From contig JAKMXF010000324.1 in the NCBI GenBank assembly GCA_024704765.1, forward strand, positions 186,001-250,000: 64,000 bases of DNA, in the 5' to 3' direction. The stretch is from Oopsacas minuta. Its lineage: Eukaryota; Animalia; Porifera. This document shows, piece after piece, positions 5,218 to 54,400 of the stretch (the first letter of the stretch is position 1; every line of letters starts with the position of its first letter). Position numbers and translations under genes: made by a program. The notes under the pieces are model-generated. The model was not told where the DNA came from and searched no databases. It was given only the letters and a program-made list of their open reading frames with translations.

Positions 5218-8031
5218 CAGATGGTTTTCATTTTCTTAGAGGTGTAGGCTTTGATACAGAACTATATATTTGAATTATGCATAAAGCCATATAAATCATT
5301 CTGGAAAGCTAACTTAAAATTCCTAATATTTGGCGACTATAAAATCAAAATTATGTAAGCAGGAGAAATTCACTAGAAATATTATACTCACCGAAAATTA
5401 GTTTTTGATTTCCCTTGTCCAGTTCCATATTTCATTAAAGTTGAACTTAACCAAGTAACTTGTACTTTCATAACGAACATGTTAAAAGTACAAAATTATG
5501 AATTTTTTAACATAATATTCGAGACAGTCGTTCTGATTGCAATTTTCGTCTACAGGTTGAATGTTTTCACCGCAAACTTCTAAAATCTCATGTAAGCAAT
5601 ATATGCGCCATTATGATGATCATTTCTTATTTTATCTCAAAATTATCATTAATTAATAATGTAGTCAGTGGTTATGCTAGCAAGGGATAATCATATGTTG
5701 TAGCTCTTATCGACATTTCTTATATGTTAACACATTTTAATAACATAAATATATTTTTTACATGTAAAAAATGTTCTTTCATCACTCCCTTAAAAGTCAT
5801 ATCTAATTACAAAAAAGGTGATTAAATATTATAAAATTCAAACAGTAATACACACAGCTGTCCTAAAAGATAAATCCTTTACCATCAATTAATCTATCAC
5901 ACCCAAATTGTGGTCATCTTTTTATCTGTAATATTGAAAGTGGTGTAAACGTATTACAATTCATTTGATCTTGCTGATGGATTATATTTTTTAGGAAACT
6001 TTGATTTCTGCTCGTTTGTGCAAAGCACAAAAGCTACTCACCATTATTTGGGTTGTAACCAGAATTGTATCTTTGATAATTGGTGTTTTTTGAACTTAAA
6101 ATTTACCGGTGATGAATTTCTGGTTAGTAACCAGGTGTTAAAGGAAAGCGAGAGACATGTAGGTGACATGTTCACTCCGTAGTATACCGCGTCAGTGAGT
6201 AATGGAGAGAATCATGAGCTTGGCGAGCGACGGTTAAAAGGGCATAATTCTTAACCTGAGTGAAGAGAAAACAGCCCTGGAATGTCTTATTTAGCGGGAC
6301 ATCGCGAGACTTAGCATAATTGCAGCAAATTTTGGCGGGGGATATTAACCACATTTTCGCTCAAAACATGTTCCAAATATCTGGACAGCTGGAAATTATG
6401 AAAGGGCTCTAGATGAATTTCACATTTATTCTTTGTAGTAATAATCATTTTCTAATATTTTGATTTGTGTGACGGATAACATTTCGCTAATATTAACTCG
6501 AAATGAAGTAGACAATTGTCTGCCGTATGGACCATTAACTTAATTATCGATTTCAAATCAGATATCTGTGAATTTAGTGATTCACGTTATAGAAAATTTT
6601 CTGTGTTTAGAAAGCATGGAATTAAATGAAGCGTCAATGAATGTGCATTTGTATTACATGGATAATGGATACCTAAACCAAAAGTATTGTCTCAAAATAG
6701 TATATGAGTTATCAAATAATCTACACTCAAGTAAAGTTTAAGCTGTTTGTCTTATTAACTGGAACTATCATTTGCATGGTTCCGTTTTGCTGGATTAATA
6801 GCATTCTTATAAGGATTTTTGAAAAATTCCCTGATTTCTAAGTGTTACTTCCAAAAATAGCAAATCCAGGGTAGTATTTGGGAGAACAGGAATTATACAG
6901 ATTTGCAAAATTCCAATTGTTTCCCGGGATTATTCAGGGGTCCCGGAGAGTTGGTAAGTGTGTAATTGCCCTCCTTACCCTCTATTAAACGGCTACTGAA
7001 TATACAAGCATTTTACCAACACATAACCATGAAAATTGATGAATTCCTACTTTCAAATAATTGAACCTTTCACTACCAGTTTTTTACATAATGTAATTAA
7101 CCATTAATAGACACATAAATTATTTCACAACCTGGTCACGGCTGTACGTAATAGCTATGCAGTTTGGTGGTTAATTCTGGCTTATCAATATTATTCGCGA
7201 CATGTTGTACTATTCATTTGTTAGCAACCACATTGTAATTAGGAATGTCCATGGAGTACGATAATCCGCAGAATTGTGTTCTAGTTAATATGTTAGCAAC
7301 CAGTCTGGTGGTTAGATATTTATTGAAAGCTAAACCGAACAGTTGGAAGCAATTTGGGGATGTGATAATTCTAATAATTCTTTTAATGTTATTTTCACAG
7401 GTTTTGGCCAGTAAGCAAATGAACTAATATTAAAACATTCAATTTATCGAATTCTATAGTTTCAGTTCCAATATTGTATTACTTAAGTTATTAACATTGG
7501 CTCGTAGTCCATGGTTGACTCTATTCCAATTTTTTAGAATATTTTCGTATTCAAACTATAGATATTCAAAACTAATCAATATGGATTAGCATAGCTACAC
7601 GAATGGCCTATTGGAATTACTTATATTCTTAGTGAATATACAGAGTTCCATCGCTATATTTGGGGTCATACCAAGTTGGTCCCGTTGGCTAATACTATTT
7701 CTATTAGCGGCCAAACGGAACGTCTCCTACGTTATATGGATATTTTAGGGGACCTTGCAACTCTAATAAATATAATTTGGGTGGGAGGAGCAAGGAGGGT
7801 GTAAGATCGCGAACACTTGCCCTCCTCACCCTCTAAATGAAGCACTAACTTGAAAAGTCCATGTGGAAGGGCTCACATATATATTTTGTTAGCTCTATGG
7901 GGCGGTAACCAAGCCAAGTGGACTCAGGCCACCTCGGGTTCGAAGCTTATACCCAAAATTATAATTAACACGTCCCCCAAAAGTGGGACGGTAGAGTTCT
8001 AACCACCTGTTATATAATATTTAAGCTTAGA

Positions 8032-10295
8032 ATGGCAGACATAACACCATCCAATAAAGAACTTGAAGTAAAACTACTATGTGACCGTAGCATCGTCCCA
8101 AACTCCCCTAACGATACCGAGATCCATCTCATGTGCCAGATAACTGCCCCCGAGGACGATATGATCCGGGCCCCCGTCTCGATATGCGCCGTTATCGACA
8201 GAAGCAGCAGCATGAAGGACAATATGGAACTAATGCGAATGACACTAAAATTCATGGTAGACCAGTTCAGAGCTGAAGATAGATTGGCTCTGGTCATGTT
8301 TGATCATGATGTCAGTGTTGAGTTTGAGTTGACTGCAATGAACGAAGGGGGAAAGGAGAAAGCAAGGAAGATAATTGAGAGTATTTGTGAGAGAGGGCAT
8401 ACAAACCTGAGCGGGGGGCTGTTAGCAGGCCTGAACGTATTCTATCAGGTATATTTATATGATAAATTATTGACACCTATTTTAGTTATTCTATTAGTAA
8501 ACCATGGATATGAAGGCATTTTCTCTGAGATTTGTCATATTTCTCAACTTGTACCATTTATTATTAGAAATCGTTGTATTAGAGATTAGGTCCCATAACT
8601 AGTCAGGGGAGACGCGTATAATTCGTATTTGTGTCTAGGTTCCCGAAGAACTCGCTACAAAAGTAGAATCAGTCCTTCTATTCACAGATGGGAGAGCTAA
8701 CTATGGAATAACAAACCCCAGAACATTGGAGAAGGCAGCGCGTAATACCGTGATGCAGATTTCTAGAAATACAAATATATTCACGTTTGGATATGGGACA
8801 GAGCATGATGCGAATATCCTACGTACGATAGCCGAGGCAGGAAATGGGCTGTTCTACTTTATTGAGAGCCAAGAGAGTATTCCTGAGTCGTTTTGTGATT
8901 GTCTAGGAGGGCTACTGAGTGTGGCAGCTCAGAACTTAATACTGTCACTCACTGCTGAATGTCAGGTGAGTAATTGTTATGATTAATCTTGAATAATTAT
9001 TGGAAACTTCCTTATATGGTAGTTCAGTTACAATTGGGCCCAATTATTGTCTGTTTGTCTGTCTGTTTGTCTGTTAGTTAGTTAGTTAGTTAGTTTGTTT
9101 GTTTGTTTGTTTGTTTGTATTATAGTTCAGAATTAAATTTCATTTTTGCAAGTCTGTAATTCACCTAAACCAATCAACTTTCTGTCTCAGTTAGGCATTA
9201 ATTTCTATTTATAGCAATAGAATATCAGCCTACGCATACTCGTAAACCCTCACATCTGATTGGGTGTGATATTACCATACCTTTACACTGTATGTAGGTT
9301 GTGTTGCAAAAACCCTCAACGCCATTTCCGGTGACAGTTGTTAAACCTGGAAAAGAGATACAAATAAAAGTGCCAGATATATATTCAGGAGAAGCAAAAT
9401 GTGTTGTAGTTCCTACTCTACTATCTGGAACCAGAAACCCAGTACAAGAAGAGGTGTTGTTAGCTAAATTGAATGTTACAGGTTTCAGTGTTTGTTCAAG
9501 TTCTCATGTCTCACTGGATTCGCAAGTTAGCGTGTTTGTTGATCCAAATTGTAAAATAGCGGTTAATTCTAAAGACCAGGGGGATATATTGGTTAACAGG
9601 ATGAGAATTGCTACTTCTGAGGTAAGTTCTTATAGAAACTGTGTCTTAATGGCATATACGTCATATGACACAGAACTTCATATGCTTTTTAGATATCTAA
9701 CCATGGATGGTAGATTTTGTTTATCTGCTTGGATGTTATCCTGGGTCATTTTGATGCACTCATGGCATAGAAAACTTTTCACCATTTTTGGGTATAATTC
9801 CGACCGATCTTAGAAATTTCGTCTTAACCAACGGATGAAATATGCCCAAGCTACGATTCCTGTTTGTTTGTTATTGTTTACACATATTTCTAGGTGTTAG
9901 AAGAAGGTAAACAACTCTCAGAGAAAGGAGAGATCGCCGAAGCTCGCCAACTAATCACAGATCTAATCCAAACTATATCTCATTCAGAAGTAGGGAAACA
10001 TGAAGTTTGTCTATACTGTATTGAGTCCTTAAACGAAGTTTTAGTTGAGTTAAAGGACAAAATAACCTATAAGGCAAAGGCTAACAAACTTATGAACCAA
10101 TTCGCGCAAGGACACGCTTGGCAACGCGCAAATGTGTCAAAACCGACGATGCTTCAACAACACATTGCAGACAACGTCTGTGCTACTGACAGTAAGGAAG
10201 AGAAACTTAAGCAGGCCGAGGTAACTCCCTTCTTCGCCAATCCTTACCAGAATAAAAAGAAAGGTGCTATGAAGATGGGATATTTTTTGAAATAA
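8032..10295 (+). CDS. VWA-domain protein with C-terminal helical (Vwaint-like) region, 4 exons, ~489 aa
   Basis: Exons 8032-8448, 8639-8965, 9298-9621, 9894-10295, all GT-AG and in frame. MIDAS motif DRSSSM, TNLSGGL and VLLFTDG; C-terminal HAWQR motif. Confidence 0.85.
9052..9118. repeat. (GTYT)n/(GTTA)n/(GTTT)n microsatellite in VWA intron 2
   Basis: Visible tetranucleotide tract. Confidence 0.9.
9165..9268. repeat. Dispersed CCAATCA...TGATTGG palindromic repeat
   Basis: CTAAACCAATCAA...TAGAATATCAGCCTAC...AACCCTCACATCTGATTGGGTG. Confidence 0.7.
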
Positions 10296-10485
10296 AATGT
10301 GGACCATGGATTGTAGATATTTAGATTTTGAGAGATTTGTATGTAAGGTGAATTACCTATTTTAGATAATTCGTAATATCTGATTATTGTCAGATTATTT
10401 ATTTTTGGAAACTTCCCTCATTTGTAATACTGCCCCGTCCCCTCCGTGTTCCATATCTTTTCATTTATCAAGGTGTTTTTCCCCC

Positions 10486-10595
10486 CTAAACCAATCAATT
10501 TACACTCTCAGATGGGTGTGAAGTATTTGCAGAGTTTTTGTATAGAATATCAGCCTACATATATGTGGGGCAACCCTCAAATCTGATTGGGTGAC
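10486..10595. repeat. Dispersed CCAATCA...TGATTGG palindromic repeat
   Basis: CTAAACCAATCAA...TAGAATATCAGCCTAC...AACCCTCAAATCTGATTGGGTG, very similar to 9165-9268. Confidence 0.7.
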
Positions 10596-10750
10596 AAGTA
10601 ATATTTTCGCCCAATCAAACTTCTTACATTTAGATTGTAAAATGTGTTCGCCACATTCCCACAGCAAATATTTATGTTTTTGTTTACCTCTCGACCCCAA
10701 AGTGTCTTGAGCGTTATTTACCAAACTTTACCTATATTTATTCTATAAGC

Positions 10751-12735
10751 ATGACATTCCTTATATTCATCTTGTTGCTATGGTTACCTTTAACAAATTC
10801 GCTATCATTTATCTCAGAACCAGTTGATCGCACTATCTCTATACATTTCCCTGTTGAATTCAATTGCTTTGTATCACACACTGACGCAATCCTACTCATA
10901 TGGTCACTCAACACACAGAGATTTTCATGTAACGGTGATTGTTTTCCAAGTTTACCTGGCTATGTATTTGAAACTCTTAGGTACAATAATGCAACACATT
11001 TTATTATGACAATCGAAGCTGTTAATCTGACTGATAACGGTACAGTGAGTTGTATAGCGACGGAACTAACTAGTACAATGTCAATTACGTCAACGGTTGT
11101 GCTTATTGTGAATGATGTATTGGATTTCTTGAAGACACCAGGGATACCGGATGGGGTAGAAATAATACTAATTGGATATTCGATTCTATTCGTTTGTGAG
11201 GTAAACAAACAAGGAGGGACTTTTGTATGGAAGAGACGAGGGTCTGTTGTCCCTGATAATCCAAGGTGAGAAATTGGAGAGTTTTAGGCTACAGGGACTC
11301 TGCTTAATACATATTATCCTATGTTTGATATTAACTCTTTAGATACACATATTCCACTACACCTAGCAAATCTTCTTTAAACATAACAAGCTTGACCGCG
11401 GTAGATATCGGAGAATTTGTATGTGAGGTTACCCTAGCTAGTGAAGTTATAGCTAGTTCACCTGCTATTATAACTCTAGCAGATTATAATGCTCCCTCTA
11501 TTCAACAGGGATTAGCATATGAAGTAAGTTGTCACCTCCTGTTATCTAGCACGGATATATGGAAATATTAAATGATACAAATATGGCCCCAAACTCGTAA
11601 AACTAACATATAAGTTACACCGAAGTAATTATCGCTGTCCCTTAAACTACAGCCATGTATTACTTTGACGGTTTGGGTCCATATTTGCACAATATAAGAC
11701 TCGATATACGCGGGCAATTCGATATTTCCGTGTTCGTTATACCTGGAGTTGACTGTAATGGATTAATTACAACTTTAGGTGAATGTAATTATCGGACCCC
11801 AAACGGTTACCTGTCCAGTTCTGGGTAACCCTCTCCCCACGGAGATCACATGGTCACAAGACGGGGTAACGCTACCAACAAGCTCAACTTCTGGGCCATA
11901 CTCCAATTCTGGCATCTTACAATTCGACACTTCAAGAGAATTAGATACGGGGAAGTATGACTGTACAGCAAGTAATGGACTCCATACGGTTAATGGTACA
12001 GTGTATGTAGAGGTAACAGGTCTCACAGGTATATTAACCCAATGGTATGTCATAATGGGATTAATCGTAGCCTGTCTGGCAGTTAGCTGTGTAGGTGGGG
12101 CGTTTGTGTTGTCGTTAGTTTGTTGCTATATTGACCAGAGAAGTGAGGATAAACTCACTAAGAAGTACGAAGAAAGGATAAAACAAGTAAAGAGTAGAAG
12201 AGCAGAGCGTGCAAGAGAACATAGAGAAAGGTGATTTGATGTTTAGTTAACAAATAGAGTCAATTCCAGTTATATCGAAGCTGAAGGGACCGCAATAATT
12301 ACTCCGATATGACCGATTAATTATATGGTACTTTGACTGTTAGGTTTTCGTTTCCATAGTAGAGTTCGCCTATTAGCAAATCGTATATTGCACGAATTCC
12401 CTTGGTAAATAGGCGGACACCGCTGTTTGATGTTAAATCAATCTGTATTTAGATTTGAAAGTGCAAAGACAACTCAAGTAAGTACAATAATTAATGACTC
12501 ATCGAGGCCATCTAGTCAGCCAACTGTTTACAAGAACATACATACGGACAAATATCAATATACAGATTTTCTCAAGAACCCAGACGGGTCTGTGACGTAT
12601 TCAGTTAAGCAGGATAGGGTACAGATAGGGGGCAAACTGGGGAAACGTCCGAATACTGTAGCGGAGATAGAGATAGCTCCGATTATGGAAGAAAGGCCAC
12701 CCACTCACTTACGACTGCCAAGACATACAAAGTGA
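10751..12735 (+). CDS. Single-pass membrane receptor with three Ig-like domains, 4 exons, ~476 aa
   Basis: Exons 10751-11265, 11343-11523, 11779-12230, 12453-12735 with consistent phases. Signal peptide; Ig C..W..DxGxxxC patterns (DNGTVSC, DIGEFVC, DTGKYDC); TM segment YVIMGLIVACLAVSCVGGAFVLSLVCCYI; tyrosine-containing tail. Confidence 0.85.
11541..11757. mobile_element. Two partial, oppositely oriented MITE family 1 copies in Ig-gene intron 2
   Basis: CACGGATATAT...ATCGCTGTCCCTT followed by TTTGACGGTTTGGGTCCATATTTG...GGAGTTGACTGTA. Confidence 0.7.
12257..12335. mobile_element. Partial MITE family 1 copy
   Basis: AGTCAATTCCAGTTATATCGAAGCTGAAGGGACCGCAATAATTAC. Confidence 0.65.
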
Positions 12736-12786
12736 AACTTCTTATGCTTTTACTTATTCGATTTTTTACTTTTTATGACTCGAAAT

Positions 12787-12860
12787 TATTTCATATCTCC
12801 ATGGCAACCAAAGAATGCCATTTTATTTCATATCTCCATGGCAACCGAAGAATGTCATTT
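12787..12860. repeat. 37-bp direct tandem duplication, each unit with an RFX X-box-like motif
   Basis: TATTTCATATCTCCATGGCAACC(A/G)AAGAATG(C/T)CATTT twice. Confidence 0.85.
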
Positions 12861-13615
12861 TATATACTTTTACCAAATTCTCCAAATTCGTATATACCAG
12901 AGCCCAAGACTGGTTCCCAACCTCTTTCGCCCAATGGAGTGCCTATTATATGTACAGCACGGGACCTCTGTTCCTTATACAGCGATTCGTATTACCCTTG
13001 CCTTATTAACGGTATTCACTTTATTAGGCAAAAATGAGAGTAGCAAGATATGTTCCTTTTCCGAATAATTCCAACTTGTCTAACCTTCCTTCTGTATACA
13101 TTATCTAAGAGCTATAATGTATGGCTTATAAATTAAAGAAGTCCCAAACACATATTATTGTAAGAAAGTTCTCTTATATGATTGCTTAATTAGCAAGTTC
13201 TTACAAGGAAAGATTGTGTTTATATGTGATAAGCATGCATGCCAATTGTCCAGGTTTATGCCATATGTTAGTGTCATGTCACGATAATAGGTGTTAAAAG
13301 AATTCCCCGCTCGTTTGTAAGCCGGAATAATCATTATTTGTACGTCCCGTTAAGAAACCAATTGACCGAATACATTTAGCATTCCTTCACTCCATTTTCT
13401 TTGGTGAAAATGTGTGACCAACTTTCGCTGGAGTATATTACCCCTTAATACACAAACATTGGCTCTATCGTCTAGACACGGGGCAAGAAATCGGAGCATT
13501 TGTCCTTCAAGTTTTGTCCGTTCTTCACAAAGATGATTTTTTTAATTGAATTGTAATACAATATTTAAATAAGAGACTGATTCAAGTGAGAAATGGGAAA
13601 CCCAAATTGTTTCCT

Positions 13616-28448: not shown

Positions 28449-29852
28449 ATGTCAGAACACCTAACTCACCACAAATCTAAACCTAAGAATGCTCTGTCAT
28501 CTCATTTCATTAGTAAGTCAAAAGCTGACAGACTCCATAACGGGCAGCCTCAAAAACGAACTAGCCAGTCTGGATCTTACATCCGGACGATAACCTCTCC
28601 CCAGAGGGACATGCCAGACCTCCCTCTACTCAAAGATTCGTCTCCTGATCAGAGTGCCGAGCTGCTCAAGAAAAAACTCGCTCTATGCTCGCTTGTTTTC
28701 AATTTTATGGACGCGTCGAGTGATTTACGAGCTAAAGAAGTTAAGCGTGCCTGTCTTAACGAACTTATCGAATACATGAGTTCAAACCGTGGTGTTCTAA
28801 GTGAAGCTGTGTATCAGCCGATTATATCCATGGTTGCTATCAACGTTCTCCGTTCTCTACCACCGAATGAACGTGAGGAATTCGACCCGGACGAAGATGA
28901 ACCAACTCTTGAAGCCTCTTGGTCTCATCTCCAGTTGGTATACGAGTTTTTTGTTAAATTCCTAGAGTACCCAGATTTCAATCCGCAGCTTGCCAAGAAA
29001 TATGTAAACCAGAATTTCGTTGTCCAACTCTTAGATCTATTTGATTCAGAGGATCCTCGTGAGAGAGATTATCTAAAAACTGTCCTACACCGTATCTATG
29101 GGAAATTCCTTGGCCTACGTGCTTTCATACGCAAACAAGTAAATAATATATTTCTACGGTACACTTTTGAGATTGAAAAGTTTTTCGGTATCGCTGAGTT
29201 ATTGGAGATTTTAGGAAGTATCATAAACGGATTTGCTTTGCCGCTACGTTCTGAACACAAAACTTTCCTGCAAAAAGTTCTTGTGCCGCTACATAAACCA
29301 AAATCTTTATATTTATATCACCCCCAATTGACCTACTGTATCATTCAGTTTCTCGAGAAAGATTCGACTTTGACTGAATCTGTTGTTCAGGGAATTTTGA
29401 GACTTTGGCCGAGGACTTGCAGCAGTAAGGAAGTAATGCTTCTGAATGAATTAGAGGAAATTTTGGATGTAATAGACCCATCGCAGTTTGTCAAAATACA
29501 AGCATTGTTGTTCACTAGAATTTCCCAATGTGTGCAGTCCCCACATTTCCAAGTTTCAGAACGTGCCCTTTATTTCTGGAATAATGACTACGTTTTTAAC
29601 TTAATTGAAGAGAACGTCAAACCTATTCTCCCGATAATGTACGGGCCCTTGGTAACAGCACATGGGAAGCAATGGAATGCGAATATAATAGAAATGATAG
29701 CTAATGTACTGAAATCATTTCGGACCATGGATTCTCAACTATACGATAAACTAGAAGGGAGATATCGTGATGACAAACAGACAGCTGAGAAAAAGTTAAA
29801 AGAACGAGCGTTCCTTTGGGAAAAATTAGAAGGAATGGCTCTTAGAAAATGA
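28449..29852 (+). CDS. PPP2R5: PP2A regulatory subunit B56 (B'), alpha/beta/epsilon-like, intron-less
   Basis: [66 protein letters not shown]. Paralog not determinable, so only the family symbol is given. Confidence 0.96.
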
Positions 29853-30158: not shown

Positions 30159-30455
30159 CTATAGAGATAGTACAGAATTATTCGGGAATTCCCCTTGAAT
30201 GGAAAACTAGCTATTCATTCACTGGAATTTCTTTAATACTAACACCAACGGGGACGGCCATTTATCCTAAGTTCCTATTAACCGGAGTAATACAAATTTG
30301 TTGACGATTATAGAGACCTGACTTATGTGTCATAATTCTTCGTTTTATCCGCAAAATCGAATATTAAGTAAAATTTAATTGGTCAGCAGGAAGTGAAAAA
30401 TATAACCAAATATAACATATTTTCTGTAACCATGGTGATCTTATATCTGATTAGT

Positions 30456-31927
30456 ATGCAGGATCCTAACGAGGATACAGAATGGAATGACATCCTTAGA
30501 TCTAGAGGTATTCTACCCCCTAAAAAGGAGCCGGCTATAACAGAGGCTGAGATTACTCAGATGATCGATGCAGCAGCTGAGAAGAAGCAAGCAGAGGAGA
30601 TTAGGGGTACAGCTAAACCTCTAGAGGATATGACTATAGATGAATTAGATGCGATGGAGGATATAGAAGATGAGAGAGCTCTGAATAAATACAGGTTATA
30701 ATAGTGACGTCATAGTACAGCTAACTACTGTTATATCGAACACAGATATATCAAAATACCCGCTTATATCAAATCTGTAATTATACAAATATGGTCCCAA
30801 ACCGTCAAACTAACGTATATTCCATCGGGTATATCTAAGTAATTATCACGGCCCCTTAAGCTTCGATAAAACCGGAGTTGGTAATATATAATAATTGTAC
30901 CTTTTATGATAAATATTTCTATTTATAGAACTCAGAGAATGGCTGAAATAATGTCTGCACAGGCTAAGCCTAGCTTCGGTTCTCTCTTGGAGATAACAGC
31001 TCATGAGTATGTTACCCAGGTCAATAAAGCTGGGAAGATGATATGGGTAGTACTGCATCTCTTCCAACCATAATATCCTCAATATATGACTATAGCATAG
31101 GACAGTCAATTCCCGTTATATCGAAGCTCAAGGGACCACGATTATACGAATTTCTAGATAACGCGAACATATTTTAACCGTCCGTTGCTGTTAGTATTTA
31201 CTAGGTTACACTGTGCATCGATGTAACAGGAGTTGACTGTACTTCAATACTTGTCAAACAAGACTGATTTTCGACTCGGACAAGTTCGAATCATGAACTA
31301 AAATTCACACCTATTACAAAATTATGACGTAATTGCCATATCTTAATTCAAATTACTTTTGAATATTGTTTTCCTTAACATTCCTACTATCCCATTGTGT
31401 AACCTGCTTAACAAACATCTGGGAGAGCTTGCTATCAGATTCCCACATACTAAATTCATTCGTTCTGTCTCAACTGACTGTATCAAGAATTATCCTGATA
31501 AGAATCTTCCAACTCTCTTCGTTTACTTGGAAGGAGAACTCAAATTCCAATTCGTGGGTGCTCATTTATTTGATGGAATGAATCTCAGAGTACAAGGTAA
31601 TTACTGTTATCCGAAATTAGCACTATTGACAGTGATGTATGCACTGTAAGCTATCCGGAAACTAAAATGGACAAAACAGGTCTAACGTATAACGGATCAA
31701 AAACCGATTACGTCCTATGTGTGAATCAGAATTTTTGCTATACCCACTTCTCGGTAAATCTAATTTCTACTATTTCTATTGTAGATCTAGAATGGATGTT
31801 AGCAGAGAGAGGAGCTATAATAACAGAATTAGAATCTGATCCTAGGAAGGATAGAGAAATAAGAGATGCTATGAAAATAGGAATATCTACAGCTAATAGA
31901 GACTCTTCAGATGATGAATATGATTAG
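30456..31927 (+). CDS. PDCL3: Phosducin-like protein 3, 4 exons, 244 aa; intron 2 is U12-type AT-AC
   Basis: Exons 30456-30694, 30929-31072, 31388-31596, 31785-31927. [54 protein letters not shown]...GAI.TELE.DP. Confidence 0.93.
30716..30883. mobile_element. MITE family 1 copy in PDCL3 intron 1
   Basis: TACAGCTAACTACTGTTATATCGAACAC...GGTCCCAAACCGTCAAA...AAGCTTCGATAAAACCGGAGTTG. Confidence 0.75.
31073..31387 (+). other. U12-type (minor spliceosome) AT-AC intron
   Basis: 5' end ATATCCTC; branch site TTCCTTAAC at 31371-31379; terminal AC at 31386-31387. Removal joins TA+T into Tyr and restores the conserved HL...IPLC. Confidence 0.92.
31103..31239. mobile_element. MITE family 1 copy with altered interior, inside the U12 intron
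   Basis: Ends CAGTCAATTCCCGTTATATCGAAGCTCAAGGGACC and CGATGTAACAGGAGTTGACTG(TA). Confidence 0.7.
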
Positions 31928-32213
31928 TATTTGTATTTGTTTGTTGTTTATATGTTTGTATACAGATATATATCATATAGTGTATTATGCCGGTAGTATT
32001 ATTCACTCATATTTGCTATGATTTATTCAATCATTACTTAATATATTTCTTAAAGGAGCTAATATAGTTTTACGTGACGAATTTGGCAATTTTCTTGCTA
32101 TAATATATTTTCTTTAGCACAAACAGTAAAAATGTTTATATACATACTAACATACAATATAAATGGAAATACGAATCATGTCTTTCGGGGGCTAGCTAAC
32201 AACAAACTAACAT

Positions 32214-45400: not shown

Positions 45401-48400
45401 CACTTTGTCTATCTAATCTACAACAGAGAATGGACTCCCTCAATGACATGGCCCAGGAGTATAGAAGTTATCAGAAGAAGTTCCAGATGGAACTAACTCG
45501 TTTCGACGAGCTCGAGGAGACCCATGCAGAACTGAAACTGAAACATACTCTATGGAATGTGCAAAGTGAGTTTGATACCGTCAGCGAGGAGTGGGGACAA
45601 ACTAAATTATGTGACATACAACCTGATACTATGTCGTCACAGGTTACCCGGTATGTCAAGACAACGTTCCAATTAGACAAGGGTCTACCTCCGAATCAAA
45701 TCGTCCCTCAGTTGAAAGCGAAAGTCAGTCGGATGAAAGACAAAATGCCAACCATAACCGACTTATGTAATCCTAATTTAAAACAGAGACACTGGGCACA
45801 ACTTTCAGCCCTTGTCAACAAAGAAATGAAACCCGATCTCTTAACAATTCAAGACTTAGATGAGATGGCTATATTCGGTATTGCAGAACAAGTCCAGGAA
45901 ATATCTGGGCAAGCTTCCTCAGAAGCTAATCTATCAAATATGCTACAAATGGTCGAAGATACATGGAAGAAAACCGAATTTTTCGTCTTGAATCATCGTG
46001 ACACAAAAGATGTATTTATACTCGGTGGGACTGAGGATGTACAGATCGCGTTAGATGATAGTTTAGTTCAGATTAGTACGATTCTAGGTTCAAGGCATGT
46101 GGGGCCGATTAAACCAAAGGTTGAGGATATGCACAATCAGCTGATTTTGTTCTCAGAGACTTTGGATGCTTGGTTGGACTGTCAGCATCAATGGCTGTAT
46201 CTGGAGAGTATATTCACTGCCCCTGATATTCAAAGACAGTTGCCGGAAGAAGCGAAAGACTTTGCGACGGTTGACAAATCTTGGAAAGAGATTATGCGAG
46301 ACGTTAAGAAACTTCCTAAAGCACTTCGTGCCTGTACAGCTCCTGGAAGACTCGAGGCATTCCAACAGAACAACCAGTTGCTAGAGAAGATACAAAAATG
46401 TTTGGAGGAATATTTGGAGACGAAAAGACTGTCTTTCCCAAGATTTTACTTCCTTTCAAACGACGAACTACTCGAAATCCTCTCTCAAACAAGAAATCCA
46501 CAAGCAGTCCAACCTCATTTACGCAAATGTTTCGATGCCATTTCGAAGTTAGATTTCGCAAAGACGAAGAACGAAATGGGAGAGGAAGTATTCACAACAG
46601 ATATTCTAGCAATGCTATCCCCTGAGGGAGAGCGTGTCCCCTCACGAAGGGCCTAAAGGCTCGAGGCAATGTGGAGTCCTGGCTAAACCATGTTGAAGAG
46701 AGTATGATGAAATCTCTGTATAGAATTACCAAAGCAGCATTGCAGGATTTTCAACAGAAAGCTCGTCACGATTGGTGCATACTCCATCCGAGTCAAATCG
46801 TACTCACAGTCTCACAGGTAATGTGGGCACAAGACATCACTGAGGCTCTGATGGATAAAGACGATCCAATAAGTAAAGTTAAACAATGCGAAGAACAGTG
46901 CTATGCAAATCTTACCAAACTAGCTACAATGGTTAGAGGCAACCTCTCAAAGCTAAGTCGCAACCTCGTCACTACATTAATCACACTTGACGTACACTCC
47001 CGTGATATCGTATCGGAGATGCGAGTGAATGAGACGAAAGGAGTGACGGACTTCGGTTGGGTTAAGAACCTACGTTACTACTGGGAGGCAGATGAAGATG
47101 ATTGCATTGTCCGCATGTCGAATTCTAACTATCTATACGGGTATGAGTATTTAGGTGCATGTTCTAGGTTAGTTGTCACACCTCTTACTGATAGGTGTTA
47201 TCTCTGTCTTATGGGAGCTCTCCAGTTGGATTTAGGGGGTGCGCCGGCTGGTCCCGCGGGTACAGGGAAAACTGAGACAGTTAAGGATCTCGCCAAAGGC
47301 CTCGCTAAGCAGTGTGTCGTGTTCAACTGTTCGGAAGGTTTGGATTTCAAAATGATGGGTCGCTTTTTCTCTGGACTAGCACAGTCGGGTGCTTGGTGCT
47401 GCTTCGATGAGTTTAATAGGATTGATATAGAAGTGTTGTCTGTAATAGCGCAACAAATACTCACAATTCGTAACGCGAAATCGCATAAATTAGAGAAATT
47501 CTTGTTCGAAGGCCGCGAGATAAAACTCAACAGAACCTGTTCCGTTTTTATCACCATGAATCCCGGTTATGCCGGTCGTACTGAGTTACCGGATAACTTG
47601 AAAGCACTTTTCCGTCCGTTCGCCATGATGGTGCCCGACTATGCCCTGATTGCTGAAGTTATATTATACTCAGAAGGTTTCGAGTCAAGCAAGGGCCTCG
47701 CACAGAAAATGGTACAAATGTACAAGCTATGTTCTGAGCAGTTATCCCAGCAATCACATTATGACTTTGGCATGCGAGCTGTAAAATCTGTTCTTGTAAT
47801 GGCCGGTGCCTTGAAGAGAGAAAATCCCGATAAACACGAAGATGTAGTGTTAATCCGCGCACTGAGAGATTCTAATCTGCCAAAATTCCTTAAACAAGAT
47901 GCTATATTATTCAAAGCTATTCTCCAGGACTTATTCCCAGGGATTGTACTTCCTGAACACGATTATGGTAAGTTCCAAACTGCAATACAGGATTGTCTAA
48001 AGTTGAATGGATTCCAAGTCCAGGCGAATTTGATAAAGAAAATAATACAGTTGCATGAGACTATGATCGTACGTCACGGCGTTATGTTAGTGGGGCCTAC
48101 TGGCGGGGGTAAAACCACATGCTATCGCACCCTCAAGGAGACCCTCGGGAAAATGAAAGAGGTTGAAGTCAGTCCATATTACCAGAAGGTCCGCACAGAT
48201 GTTTTGAACCCAAAAGCTGTGGCCATGGGTGAATTGTACGGTGAAGTTAATAAGTTGACTCTAGAATGGCAGGATGGTTTGATGGCTGTCTGCGTGAGAG
48301 AAGCCGTCAAAGATACGACAGAGGATCAAAAATGGATTGTATGCGATGGCCCTGTTGACGCTTTGTGGATAGAGAACATGAATACTGTATTGGATGATAA

Positions 48401-51400
48401 TAAAATGTTATGTCTAGCAAACTCTGAGCGAATAAAACTTAATCCAACTATTCACATGTTATTTGAGGTCCAGGATTTAGCTGTAGCAAGCCCAGCAACG
48501 GTTAGTAGATGTGGAATGGTGTATATTGACCCTGAAGAGCTGGGGTGGCGTCCATTCGTGAGATCTTGGATCATGGAGAGGTTATCTTCCTCAATGAAAG
48601 ACGCAACTAAAGAATATCTCTTCAATTTATTTGATAATTACATTGATCCCGGTCTAAAGTTCGTTAGGAAAATGTGTCTGCAGGTGATCGACCAAGTTGA
48701 TATGGGGAAGGTGACGGGTCTCTGTGCTCTCCTTGAGGTGTTACTATTAGATACCATCGAAGCGAGACACGAGGCCAGAGATAAAAAGATCCAACCTGGG
48801 GTAGACATGTCAGAGGACCCGGTAAAATTGCATCCACTAATCGCATCACTATTCATATTCTGCTATACCTGGAATATAGCTGGGAACGTCACACAAAAAA
48901 CTATGGAGAATTGGGACGGATTTGTTCGTGAGAATTTCTCTGATCTAACCGAGGCCAGATTACCTCCTTCAGGCGATATGTTTGAATATTACGTAGACAT
49001 GGAATCGAGACGATTTGAAAAATGGGAACATATTCTGCCCGAGTTCAAATACGATCGAGAAGTTCCTTATTTCGATATTTTAGTGCCGACGATTGACACA
49101 GTGCGTTACGGGTTCTTAATGGGGAAATTGTTAGGTCAGAGACGGTCTGTGTTATTCACAGGGGAAACTGGGGTGGGTAAGAGTGTTATAGCTAAGGGAC
49201 AGCTTCTGGAAATGCAGGAGAAAGGGTTCTACCTTCCTGTCACTTTAAACTTCTCAGCTCAAACTTCCTCAAAACGTACACAAGAAATAATTGAAAGCAA
49301 ACTTGAGAAAAAACGCAAAACAATATTAGGTGCGCCAGCTGGAAAACATATTGTCATATTTGTGGATGATATGAATATGCCGAAACTTGACCGTTACGGT
49401 TCTCAGCCGCCAATCGAACTCTTACGGCAGTACATGGACTTCAGTGGATTCTACGATCGAGAAAAGTTGTTTTGGAAGGAAATCCGTGACGTTACGATTT
49501 CAGCAGCATGTGGCCCTCCAAGTGGTGGCCGTAATCCCGTTACCCCGCGGATTATGCGGCATTTCACAATGTTCGCATTGCCGAGTCCGTCTGATATTTC
49601 CCAGAAAGGAATATTTAGTGCTATTGTCACTGGATTCCTGGAAGATTTCACCGCCGAAGTTAAAGAAATGTCCGATTCTATTGTCAATGCTTCTATTGAG
49701 ATATACGCACGTATAAGTACAGATCTACTACCCACGCCAGATAAGAGTCATTACACATTCAATCTAAGAGATTTATCCAAATGCATACAGGGGATACTTC
49801 AAGCCGACCCGAGCATTATTAGAGACAAGAATCAAATGTTTCGTTTGTTCATGCACGAATCTATGCGAGCTTTTCACGATCGGTTGATCAATAAGACTGA
49901 TAAGGGATATTTCTATAATATTCTCTCTGAGATTAGTTTGAAGTATTTCAGTAAAGACGTGGCCCCAGAAAAACTAGAAAACGAACCGATTTTATTTGGA
50001 GATTTTATGAAGATGGGTGCTCCTCCTTCAGATAGAATTTATGAGGATTTGATGGACGTTAGAAAGGTAAGGAATGTTTTAGGCGACTATCTTGACGACT
50101 TTAACATGAACAGCACGAAGGAAATGAATTTAGTTTTCTTTATGGACGCGACTGAACACGTTTCAAGGATCGCTCGTATGGTGCGACAGCCACGAGGTAA
50201 CGCATTGTTAGTAGGGGTAGGAGGCACTGGAAAGCAGAGTCTAACACGACTCGCTGCGCACATGAACGGTTATAAATGCTTCCAAATTGAACTGACTCGT
50301 GGCTACAATTACGAATCATTTCGCGAAGATTTACGGCGATTATACAACATAGCAGGTGTTGAGAACCAAGACACAGTATTCCTGTTTACAGACACTCAAA
50401 TAGTTGTTGAAGAATTCCTTGAGGACATCAATAATATGCTCAATTCTGGAGAAGTACCAAATTTATTCGACGCGGAGGAGTATGAGAAGATAATCAACGC
50501 CACACGGCCTTTTGCGAAAGAAGTAGGCATTCCAGAGGGTGACAGAGATGGAATTTATAACTATTTCATCAGTAGAGTACAGGATAGATTGCATATAGTT
50601 ATTTGTATGAGTCCTGTGGGTGACATGTTCCGCTCAAGGTGTCGAATGTTCCCCTCACTTGTGAATTGCTGTACAATCGATTGGTTCACTGAATGGCCAA
50701 GAGAAGCTCTACTGTCTGTCGCGAAAAATCTTTTCGAAGAGGTTGAGACAATAGAAGAGGCTTTGAAGGTAAAAATTGCTAGAATGTGTGTAGAAATACA
50801 CACGAGCGTTAGTACTATGGCAGAACGTTTCTTCGCAGAGCTCCGTAGACGCTACTACACAACACCTACTTCCTATCTGGAACTGATCACGCTCTATTTA
50901 CAAATGTTAGATGAAAAGAGAAAACAGCTCACTATTTCTAGAGATCGTGTTGCGAATGGCTTGAAGAAACTGGAAGAAACCAATACTGTGGTTGATGATA
51001 TGCAGAAGGAGTTGACTGAGCTAGAGCCACAACTTAAGAAACAATCTGAAGAGACTGCTGCGCTTATGGAGACTCTAGAAGCTGACCAGAAGGAAGCGGA
51101 TAGAGTAAGGAAGATAGTTGTTAAGGACCAGGCTAGCGCTCAGATAAAAACGGAGGAAACTCAGGCAATAGCTGCTGATGCTCAGAAAGATTTAGATATT
51201 GCCCTACCTGCGTTAGAGAACGCCAATAAAGCACTTAATTCTTTAGAGAAAAGCGATATTTCGGAGGTGAGAACTTTCGCAAAACCTCCTCCAATGGTTT
51301 TAACCGTTATGGAGTCTGTGTGCATTCTCTTTGGACAGCGTCCAGACTGGAGTACTGGTAAAACTTTACTGACAGATCCCAATTTTATCAAACGTCTATT

Positions 51401-54400
51401 CGACTATGACAAAGATAATATCCCAGAGAACTTTCTACGTAAACTCAAGAAATATATTGAAAATCCTAGTTTTAACGCTGAAGAAGTTGGTAGGAGTAGT
51501 AGAGCTTGTAAATCAATTGTAATGTGGGTCATTGCTGTTGATATATATGCCAAGGTGTTTAAGGAGGTTGAGCCGAAACGACAGAGACTTGAAGCCGCTC
51601 AAAATGAGCTGGCTATCGTGACAAGTGAGCTCGAGAAGAAAGAGGAAGAACTTAGAATTGTTGAGGATAAAATTGATCAACTAAAGGCAGCCTTCAATGA
51701 CAGTCTCGCTGAGAAAGAAAGGCTTGAGTTTACAATGGCGCAGACTGCTGCCCGGTTAGAGAGAGCTGGTCGCCTCACCTCTGCGCTGGCAGACGAGCAA
51801 ATACGCTGGGACGAGAACGTGACACAGTTTAACGCACAGCTAGGCAATGTAGTTGGTGACGTGTTCATTGCTGCGGCATGTGTCGCATATTTCGGTGCAT
51901 TCACGTCCTCGTATAGGATTGAGCTAGTAGCTTCATGGATTGAGAAATGCAAGGAGTTAGAAATTTCTGTCTCAGATAATTTATCTTTGAATAGAGTACT
52001 TGCTGATCCATATGAAATTCGACAGTGGAATGCCAGTGGTTTGCCTAGAGACGCAGTTTCAACTGAGAATGCGATTCTATGCACACGATCTCGTCGTTGG
52101 CCGTTGATGATTGATCCACAGGACCAGGCGAACCGTTGGGTTAAGACAATGGAAACTAAAAACGGTTTGAAGGTTATCAAATTAACAGACACTAACTATC
52201 TTCGGACATTAGAGAACGCTATCCGTATGGGTACACCTGTGCTCCTTGAGGAAGTGGAAGAGGCACTAGACCCTTCTTTAGAACCAATCCTTCTCAAACA
52301 AACATTCACGAAAGGTGGCCGATTGCTTATTCGTCTAGGGGACACTGATGTAGATTATGATAAGAATTTCAGGTTCTATATGACCTCCAAAATGTCTAAC
52401 CCTCATTATCTGCCAGAAGTATCAATCAAAGTTACAATAATCAATTTCACTGTGACACTATCTGGCCTAGAAGATCAACTACTTAGCGATGTAGTGCGCC
52501 TTGAGAGACCTGAGTTAGAAGAGAAGAGAAATGAATTGGTTGTAGCAATCAATCATGATAAACACCAGTTGAAAGGCATTGAGGACAAAATTTTGAAAAT
52601 GTTGTATCATGCAGAGGGTAATGTGTTAGATAACGAAGCGTTGGTAAGTGCTTTAGGTGCCAGTAAGCACACAGCTGAGGAGATCTCAGAGCGATTGGCT
52701 CAGGCCGAGTTGACTGAGAGAGATATCCTAGCTGCGCGTGAGAAATATCGTACCGTCGCTACTCGTGGGTCTCTCATATACTTTGTGATAGCTACACTAC
52801 CTGACATAGATCCTATGTATCAGTTTTCATTGAAATACTTTCAACAGTTTTTCAATGCCTGTATTGAGTCTAGTGAGAAAAGTTCTGTGTTGGATACTAG
52901 GCTGAATACACTGCTCACTAACACGACTCAGGTTTCCTATACGAACGTAGCACGCGGTCTCTTTGAACAGCATAAACTTGTATTCTCATTCATGCTGTGT
53001 TGTAATATCTTGAGGGAAAGGAAAGATGTTTTTGAGGACGATTGGAATTTCTTCTTGAGGGGTGCCGCCGCGGTTGAGAAGGAGAGAGAAGAGAAACCGA
53101 ATCAACAATGGTTGACAAACGATGTTTGGATACAGTGTTTAGATTTGGAGGAGAATCTCCCCGAATTCAAGGGCCTTTCTAGAGAAATCCTCGCCACACA
53201 TATTACTATATCCTACGGAGATATTGAAATAGCTTTGAATCCGCCAACAGCTGATGAGTATGTCGAGGTAGGAGAATTGCCCGATAACCTGGAAGAATTT
53301 CGTAGTAACAACCCAGATACGATAATAGGCCATTGGAATGAGAGACTGACTGACTTTCAGAAAATTATCTTAATAAAATCATTCAGTGAGGAGAATATTA
53401 TCCAAGCAGCTTCTCTGTTCGTAACACGGAATCTTGGGCAAATATTCATAGAAAGTCCTTCCATAGAGTTAAGCTTGTTATACCAAGATATAACCAAAAC
53501 AACACCCCTAATATTCATATTGTCAACAGGTTCCGATCCTATGTCCTCCTTCCTACGTTTTGCAGAGGATATGAACTACAACGAGCGTTTCAATACTATT
53601 TCTCTTGGACAGGGTCAAGGGCCTGTAGCTATGAATATGATATCTAAAGCCAAGGTTTCCGGCGATTGGGTGTTCTTGCAAAATTGTCATCTGGCTGCTT
53701 CGTGGATGCCGGAGCTTGAAATTATAGTGAAAGGATTTCAAATCCAAAACTCTGAGATGAATGAGAATTTCCGCCTGTATTTGAGTTCTCTGCCCACAGC
53801 TTCATTCCCTGTCTCTGTTCTCCAAGATTCAGTAAAGGTCACAAATGAACCGCCAAAGGGCCTACGAGCTAATCTCAAACGCTCATTTGCAGAGATGAAA
53901 CCCTCCTTCTTTGAAGACCACTACTTAGATTTAACTTGGAGGAAAATGGTTTTCGGAATCTGTCTATTTCATGCGGTGATTTTAGAGAGGAAAAAGTTTG
54001 GCCCGCTCGGCTGGAATATTCGCTACGAGTTCACTGACAAAGACAGAGAGACCGCTCTCCTGAACCTTAAAATGTTCCTGACGGGTGACGACATCCCGTG
54101 GGACGCCCTGATTTTTATTTCCGGAGAGATTACATATGGGGGGAGAGTCACTGATGATTGGGATCAGCGTTGTCTAAGAACGATCCTAACTCGGTTCTTC
54201 GCTCCAATAACTCTTGAACCTGGCTATATGTTCTCTGAATCTGGTTTCTACTATGCACCAGAAGCTCCTTACATAACTGATTATCGTGAGTATATTGATG
54301 GCTTCCCGATGTCGGACGATCCTGAGATTTTTGGTATGCACGATAATGCGAATATCACATACCAAATGCAAGAAGGTCAGGCTCTAATAAAAACTGTATT

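Follow-up and report, generated by a model that had tools for sequence, protein, structure and literature searches.

Evidence for a Functional U12-type AT-AC Intron in a PDCL3-like Gene of the Glass Sponge Oopsacas minuta

Introduction

The window analyzed in this study is a stretch of 64,000 nucleotides of the Oopsacas minuta genome (contig JAKMXF010000324.1), and it contains a gene encoding a protein similar to PDCL3 (phosducin-like protein 3, of the CCT/TRiC co-chaperone family) whose second exon appears to end in a stop codon. The frame of this exon finishes ...CAA CCA TA|A, and the question is whether the TAA at 31071–31073 terminates the protein or overlaps a splice donor. The original prediction was that the stop is only apparent and hides a donor of the minor spliceosome, and indeed the last A of the triplet is the first base of ATATCCTCA, which begins at 31073. 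U12-type AT-AC introns were first defined in P120/NOP2 and CMP. Minor introns are now catalogued in U12DB, MIDB, and intronIC surveys (PMC10639083, PMC11347168). The analysis below indicates that 31073–31387 is very probably a functional U12-type AT-AC intron, in phase 2, of the single PDCL3-like gene of this glass sponge.

Structure of the PDCL3-like Gene

The exons and introns were assigned from open reading frames and their translation and from splice joints in one of four sequencing runs, X4; the run data are assembled contigs, not reads, and the contig depths given here and below are unusable as quantities. The features are as follows.

30456..31927, plus strand: PDCL3-like gene with four exons (open reading frames, translation, and X4 joints)
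30456..30694, plus strand: exon 1, with the ATG at 30456, ending ...TAC AG in phase 2 (translation)
30695..30928, plus strand: intron 1, U2-type GT..AG, 234 nt (X4 joint 30694^30929, contig depth 3304; listed as 30692>30927, cut moved by +2)
30929..31072, plus strand: exon 2, matching PDCL3 residues 77–121
31073..31387, plus strand: intron 2, assigned as U12-type AT-AC, 315 nt, phase 2 (motifs and X4 joint)
31073..31081, plus strand: minor 5' splice site ATATCCTCA, with C at +8 and A at +9
31102..31240, no strand assigned: MITE of 139 bp with terminal inverted repeats ACAGTCAATTCC... and ...GGAGTTGACTGT
31371..31379, plus strand: branch-point box TTCCTTAAC, predicted to pair with the GUAAGGAA segment of the U12 snRNA of this genome
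31388..31596, plus strand: exon 3, matching PDCL3 residues 124–189, thioredoxin-like fold
31597..31784, plus strand: intron 3, U2-type GTAATT..AG, 188 nt (sequence and X4 loose ends)
31785..31927, plus strand: exon 4, with the stop TAG at 31925–31927 (X4 depth)

The exons were searched separately, one by one, against proteins and profiles. Exon 3 matched residues 124–189 of human phosducin-like protein 3 (PDB 7nvm chain P, 7nvm_P) with an E value of 2.3e-25, and exon 2 matched residues 77–121 of the same chain with an E value of 3.8e-8. The Pfam Phosducin profile (PF02114) gave an E value of 6e-4 on exon 3 alone, with a score of 19.3 bits that lies below the cut-off of 23. In these separate searches the similarity, at about 60% identity between the sponge and human proteins, spans the thioredoxin-like domain and the helical region before it, as in members of subgroup II, to which PDCL3 belongs. 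Residues 122–123, between the two alignments, correspond to the Pro codon that ends exon 2 and to a Tyr codon, TA|T, that is split by the intron and formed by joining 31072 to 31388; the junction therefore adds no insertion or deletion relative to PDCL3. The spliced reading, ...LHLFQP-Y-IPLCNLL, has the same length as human LHLYKQ-G-IPLCALI, and the conserved phosducin-like sequence is restored by splicing as predicted.

The runs differ from the assembly at a few positions. All four have C in place of T at 31852 in exon 4, a synonymous change (GAT>GAC), and two lack 19 nt at 31720, within intron 3, and have A>G at 30314. These differences are either alleles or small assembly differences. An Rfam scan of the window returned no RNA family.

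Signals of Intron 2

The donor ATATCCTCA lies at the exon boundary and departs from RTATCCT(T) only at +8, where C replaces T. The branch-point box of minor introns has the form TCCTTRAY, lies roughly 10–20 nt from the 3' splice site, and needs no polypyrimidine tract; TTCCTTAAC is a perfect example, as had been claimed. It is followed directly by ATTCCTAC, and the intron terminates in the AC at 31386–31387, such that 8 nt separate the end of the box from the end of the intron and 6 nt separate it from the AC. Within 260 kb of the contig, searched on both strands, this is the sole strict pair of donor and branch box (<=1.5 kb) that has real coding flanks. The remaining pairs have non-coding-looking flanks or lie within a long open reading frame on the opposite strand. 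The candidate at 51105–53572 (minus strand), for example, was rejected as a chance occurrence because it is inside the 2896-codon dynein heavy-chain frame on the plus strand.

A conventional intron does not account for the same exons. The stretch from 31284 to 31423 lacks an AG, a TAA shortly before 31347 closes the frame of exon 3, and the only GT dinucleotides before the stop, at 31047 and 31050, would each remove the conserved VVLHLFQP if used as donors. These three features together exclude a GT-AG intron, and no nearby GT-AG pair exists that could be used instead of the AT-AC pair.

Intron 2 resembles known U12-type AT-AC introns in its RTATCCT donor, in having a TCCTTAAC box near the 3' end, in its AC terminus, and in the lack of a polypyrimidine tract. 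Its phase is non-zero, and it is the single intron of this class among the U2-type introns of its gene, features that are also shared with known examples. It differs from them in having C rather than the usual T at +8 and in carrying a transposon.

Splicing of Intron 2

Four runs, from one sample and one study, contain the locus and were compared over 30200–32200 (2001 letters). Runs X1–X3 have a flat contig depth of about 90–245 over exons and unique intron sequence alike and are DNA-like, whereas the depth in X4 ranges from thousands to tens of thousands in the four exons and falls to 0 within intron 3. The X4 contigs carry Illumina adapter ends, and both GT-AG joints of the gene are present in X4 and absent from X1–X3. 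The published account of the O. minuta genome reports that both RNA-seq and DNA-seq Illumina libraries were made (PMC10280926). From the depth profile, the adapter ends, the spliced joints, and this mention of RNA-seq, we infer that X4 is RNA.

The joint 31072>31388 (AT..AC, skipping 315 nt) was found in X4 only, with a contig depth of 3976 and with zero letters shared across the joint. It is borne by one contig, whose shorter side is 20 letters, and by a matching 10-letter loose end; the loose end TCCAACCATA ahead of 31388 is the end of exon 2. A variant, 31071>31388 with a T between (depth 10), differs from this joint by a single base. Exon 3 is linked to exon 4 by loose ends at 31596 and 31783, which bear the sequence of the neighboring exon. 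The junction that had been put forward as the check on this intron is thus present in the RNA-like contigs, and because none of the three DNA-like runs has the spliced form, it does not come from a retrocopy. An X4 contig at 31111–31414 (depth 293) represents unspliced intron 2 together with the first 27 nt of exon 3. Minor introns are removed more slowly than the usual kind, and the occurrence of this contig alongside an empty intron 3 fits such a difference.

Minor Spliceosomal RNAs

The original prediction held that the intron implies a working minor spliceosome. Animals normally have a minor spliceosome, and the PDCL3 intron is in that sense an ordinary example. Published surveys of minor introns cover Porifera (PMC11347168). 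Covariance-model searches of the genome to which the window belongs (61,460,524 bases in 365 contigs) identified one locus for each minor snRNA. U11 scored 103.1 bits against an Rfam cut-off of 39, U12 scored 68.4 bits against 53, and U6atac (L004:1501–1600) scored 66.2 bits against 33. U4atac (L003:1501–1617) scored 52.9 bits, 0.1 bit below its cut-off of 53, and the Rfam gathering threshold alone would report the genome as lacking this RNA. U12 retains AGUAAGGAAAA, the partner of the branch box, and its GUAAGGAA and Sm site are intact; U11 retains AAAAGGGCUU, and its AAAAGGGC and Sm site are likewise intact. With three of the four RNAs above their cut-offs and the fourth a tenth of a bit under, the prediction of a working minor spliceosome is supported.

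Searches for the accompanying proteins cannot show absence. They recovered no protein specific to the minor spliceosome. The CHHC-finger matches were to a TRMT13-like open reading frame or to tandem GTSF1-like fingers, and none was SNRNP48. The former (L020:502–1791, minus strand) encodes a TRMT13-like methyltransferase of 429 residues with a single CHHC finger. Profile searches for PDCD7 (59K) and for the ubiquitin-like domain of SNRNP25 (PF16021, PF18036) gave no match, a blank that does not show absence.

In the mechanism suggested by the motifs, the RNA-like junction, the snRNA genes, and the end signals conserved in a related sponge (described below), the acting spliceosome and the base-pairing registers are taken from established knowledge of U12-type splicing. 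U11 and later U6atac would pair with the donor ATATCCTCA, and U12 would pair with TTCCTTAAC, bulging the branch adenosine about 9–10 nt from the 3' end. Excision would then join TA|T as a Tyr codon and restore ...LHLFQPYIPLCNLL... in the product. A Stowaway-like MITE would have entered the interior of the intron later, leaving splicing unharmed.

The Intron Site in Other Organisms

A word search with exon 3 yielded one protein, P0001, with 85% identity, encoded on a 614-kb ENA contig of a related sponge. The gene order on this contig matches that of the window: B56, PDCL3, and, on the opposite strand, a gene of 207 residues. The related gene has an AT-AC intron of 436 nt at the same site (L053:2525–2960). 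The first 11 nt (ATATCCTCAAT) and the last 17 nt (TTCCTTAACATTCCTAC) of the two introns are identical, and their interiors cannot be aligned; the related intron has no MITE. As judged from this comparison of sequences, identical ends around an unalignable interior are what selection confined to the minor splice signals leaves behind. Where the window has the MITE, the related intron has about four tandem copies of a unit of about 27 nt (GTAGCAGGAGGTATACAGGTGTATTCT) at L053:2690–2810.

In metagenome contigs, 80 PDCL3-like loci were detected, many of them intronless and cDNA-like. Of the distinct genomic loci, about 35 carry an intron at the exact site, in phase 2 and in the codon before IPxC; the position of the intron, which was to be compared among PDCL3 orthologs, is therefore common to the PDCL3 genes of other organisms. 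Nearly all of these introns (about 33) are U2-type, with GTAAGT or GTGAGT, a pyrimidine tract, and AG. There are two others. (i) The intron at L059:1277–1501 (VSKX01071345.1) is U12-type of the GT-AG subtype, reading GG|GTATCCTTGC ... ATCTTTAAC with 13 nt to the AG and a length of 225 nt. (ii) The intron at L063, about 490–511 (MKWU01072982.1), has TTCCTTAAC with 10 nt to the AG, and its donor lies off the contig.

The site is probably old, with a U2-type intron in most of the lineages sampled and a U12-type intron in a few. U12-to-U2 conversion is far commoner than the reverse, and in the simplest reading the intron is now, or once was, U12-type in some lineages and has turned U2-type in most. 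A single position thus appears in three states: it is U2-type in most lineages, U12-type GT-AG in one, and U12-type AT-AC in glass sponges, as would be expected if introns switch subtype and convert from U12 to U2. A search of the literature for PDCL3 together with "minor intron" found no paper. In the searched portions of the tables of Olthof et al. 2019, which include PEX16 and RNF175, PDCL3 is absent from the human and mouse minor introns, and in this the gene is unlike hosts of known U12-type AT-AC introns. The PDCL3 intron is very probably a real, conserved minor intron, previously unlisted and otherwise ordinary.

Alternative Explanations

A rival view holds that the TAA truncates a pseudogene and that the junction is an artefact of template switching, mis-assembly, or a processed copy; it draws on the fact that just one assembled contig bears the joint and that the shorter side of this contig is 20 letters. 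Template switching by reverse transcriptase is opposed by the lack of shared letters at the joint, and a retrocopy is opposed by the lack of the joined form in the DNA-like runs. The neighboring GT-AG joints occur in the same run at similar depth (again a contig value that does not measure quantity), the joint restores a conserved protein with no insertion or deletion, and another species has kept the same signals. Taken with this evidence, an artefact is extremely improbable. Removal of the intron by the major spliceosome has to be considered in its own right because the terminal dinucleotides alone do not define the class, and rare U2-type AT-AC introns exist. Such introns have ATAAGT-like donors and a polypyrimidine tract and lack a TCCTTAAC box; the donor here is ATATCCT, and a perfect TTCCTTAAC lies 8 nt from the end. 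Donor and box are conserved in the related sponge and the interior is not, and the genome has genes for the four minor snRNAs (that for U4atac at 52.9 bits against its cut-off of 53). Removal by the U2-type machinery is accordingly very improbable.

The age of the intron is a separate matter from its class. A recent gain of a U12-type intron in the hexactinellid lineage, in place of an old intron, would agree with the predominance of U2-type introns at this site and with the lack of PDCL3 in the searched part of the mammalian tables (Olthof et al. 2019). Against it are the roughly 35 metagenomic loci, perhaps not all independent, that share the exact site and phase, together with the U12-type intron of L059 and the branch box 10 nt from the AG in L063. 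We consider a recent gain somewhat unlikely.

Donor Position +8 and U6atac

The single departure of the donor from the usual sequence has a counterpart in the snRNA. The U6atac of this genome reads GUGUUGUAUG-UG-AGGAGAGA, in contrast to the well-conserved Rfam consensus, ...AUG-AA-AGGAGAGA. In classical suppressor experiments C5 and C6 of the 5' splice site reportedly pair with G15 and G14 of U6atac, a register that would place U6atac positions 12 and 11 opposite +8 and +9. Positions +4 to +9 of the 5' splice site are known to pair with U11 and U6atac (PMC11347168). The C8 and A9 of the PDCL3 donor are complementary to the G at 12 and the U at 11. The 5' end of U11 keeps the ancestral sequence, and the C at +8 costs U11 one pair.

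Further U12-type introns of the genome were gathered without conditioning on +8. With that of PDCL3 they make a set of five, whose donors are at 31073 of the window, L017:2594, L045:1711 (minus strand), L051:1718 (minus strand), and L011:1859. Those outside the window are as follows.

L017:2594–3087 (G000:C310): PEX16, U12-type GT-AG intron of 494 nt, cacact|GTATCCTCTT ... TTCCTTAAC with 8 nt to the AG
Tyr-kinase-like gene: U12-type intron with donor ATATCCTCTC, its flanks abutting at Pfam profile positions 132|133
RING-protein gene: U12-type intron with donor GTATCCTCCT
NHL-protein gene: probable U12-type intron with donor ATATCCTCTC

All five have C at +8 (four firm, namely PDCL3, PEX16, the kinase, and the RING protein, and one probable, that of the NHL protein), and at +9 there is no preference. 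In six non-validated hits of the same pattern search, the base at +8 is T, A, T, A, T, and G. From base composition alone (C about 0.19), C at +8 in five of five has a probability of about 2.5e-4, in what is a small sample. The U12-type donor of L059, GTATCCTTG, has T at +8.

The sponge PEX16 intron has a context, cacact|GTATCC, that resembles ACT|GTATCC of the human and mouse minor intron, and from this likeness it is probably the orthologous, ancient minor intron; if so, the minor spliceosome of the sponge serves old, conserved introns as well. The PEX16 intron differs from that of PDCL3 in gene and in subtype (GT-AG). At +8 the base is C in the sponge copy and T in the human and mouse donor, which reads ACT|GTATCCTTA in the part of the Olthof et al. 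2019 supplement consulted.

Two pattern searches in which +8 and +9 were left free gave 8 hits against 25, and 14 against 16, in the reversed control, i.e. no enrichment; the first of them alone gave loci, of which two are real introns. Motif rules applied to TFIIS loci gave no clear U12-type intron. The literature search found nothing on hexactinellid minor introns or on co-variation of U6atac and the 5' splice site, which is not proof of absence. The match between C at +8 and G at position 12 of U6atac may reflect co-evolution of snRNA and splice site, and it is the only part of this analysis that might be new. We give even odds to the broader proposal that the minor introns of this glass sponge, and probably those of its relatives, have as a whole shifted from RTATCCTT to RTATCCTC with a compensating A12-to-G change in U6atac. 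If C at +8 holds throughout the genome, it would constitute a natural compensatory experiment on the helix between U6atac and the 5' splice site.

The MITE and Its Genomic Setting

As published (PMC10280926), the O. minuta assembly amounts to about 61 Mb in 365 scaffolds, with a G+C content of 36% and with 1.59 introns per gene. The loss of introns that the original prediction assumed for this genome is borne out locally. The neighbor of PDCL3, PP2A-B56 (28449–29852, plus strand), is a single open reading frame of 467 codons, and the dynein heavy chain (46671–55361, plus strand) has 2896 uninterrupted codons and extends past the start given in the list of open reading frames. These unbroken frames are local evidence of strong intron depletion around the retained minor intron. 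Gene finders that accept only GT-AG and GC-AG introns would plausibly truncate or split PDCL3 at the apparent TAA, and other minor-intron genes of this compact genome would be affected likewise, with the possible result that too many conserved genes are listed as "missing" from glass sponges. The value of the PDCL3 intron is practical, for annotation, and also illustrative, as one site in three states.

The insertion in intron 2 has the properties of a MITE that were expected of it: it is short (139 bp) and non-coding, it has terminal inverted repeats, and it matches the genome at no fewer than 45 places, in both orientations and for the most part over its terminal 44 nt; a target-site duplication is suggested by the flanks. 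Members of the family are 86–235 bp long with terminal inverted repeats of about 30–44 nt, and nine full copies of 86–204 bp occur in 260 kb (G000:C324:1–260000). In the 13 copies whose flanks were compared, T usually stands to the left of the element and A to its right, consistent with a TA target duplication of the Stowaway type. The likeness to Stowaway-like (Tc1/mariner-derived) MITEs thus extends to size (139–235 bp), lack of coding sequence, long terminal inverted repeats, copy number, and TA-type flanks; the copy in intron 2 is imperfect in this last respect, its left flank being GA, not TA. The repeat is also evident in the DNA-like runs, where the contigs break at its edges (31102 and 31241) and where the depth is about 5,800–13,400 in the bin with the left terminal repeat, as compared with about 100–200 over unique exon, again as contig values and not as quantities. 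Intron 1 contains a diverged copy of the same family at about 30717–30885, recognized by shared D1/I1 repeats and coinciding with a peak of DNA depth at 30736–30869. Two introns of this small gene each bear one copy of the MITE.
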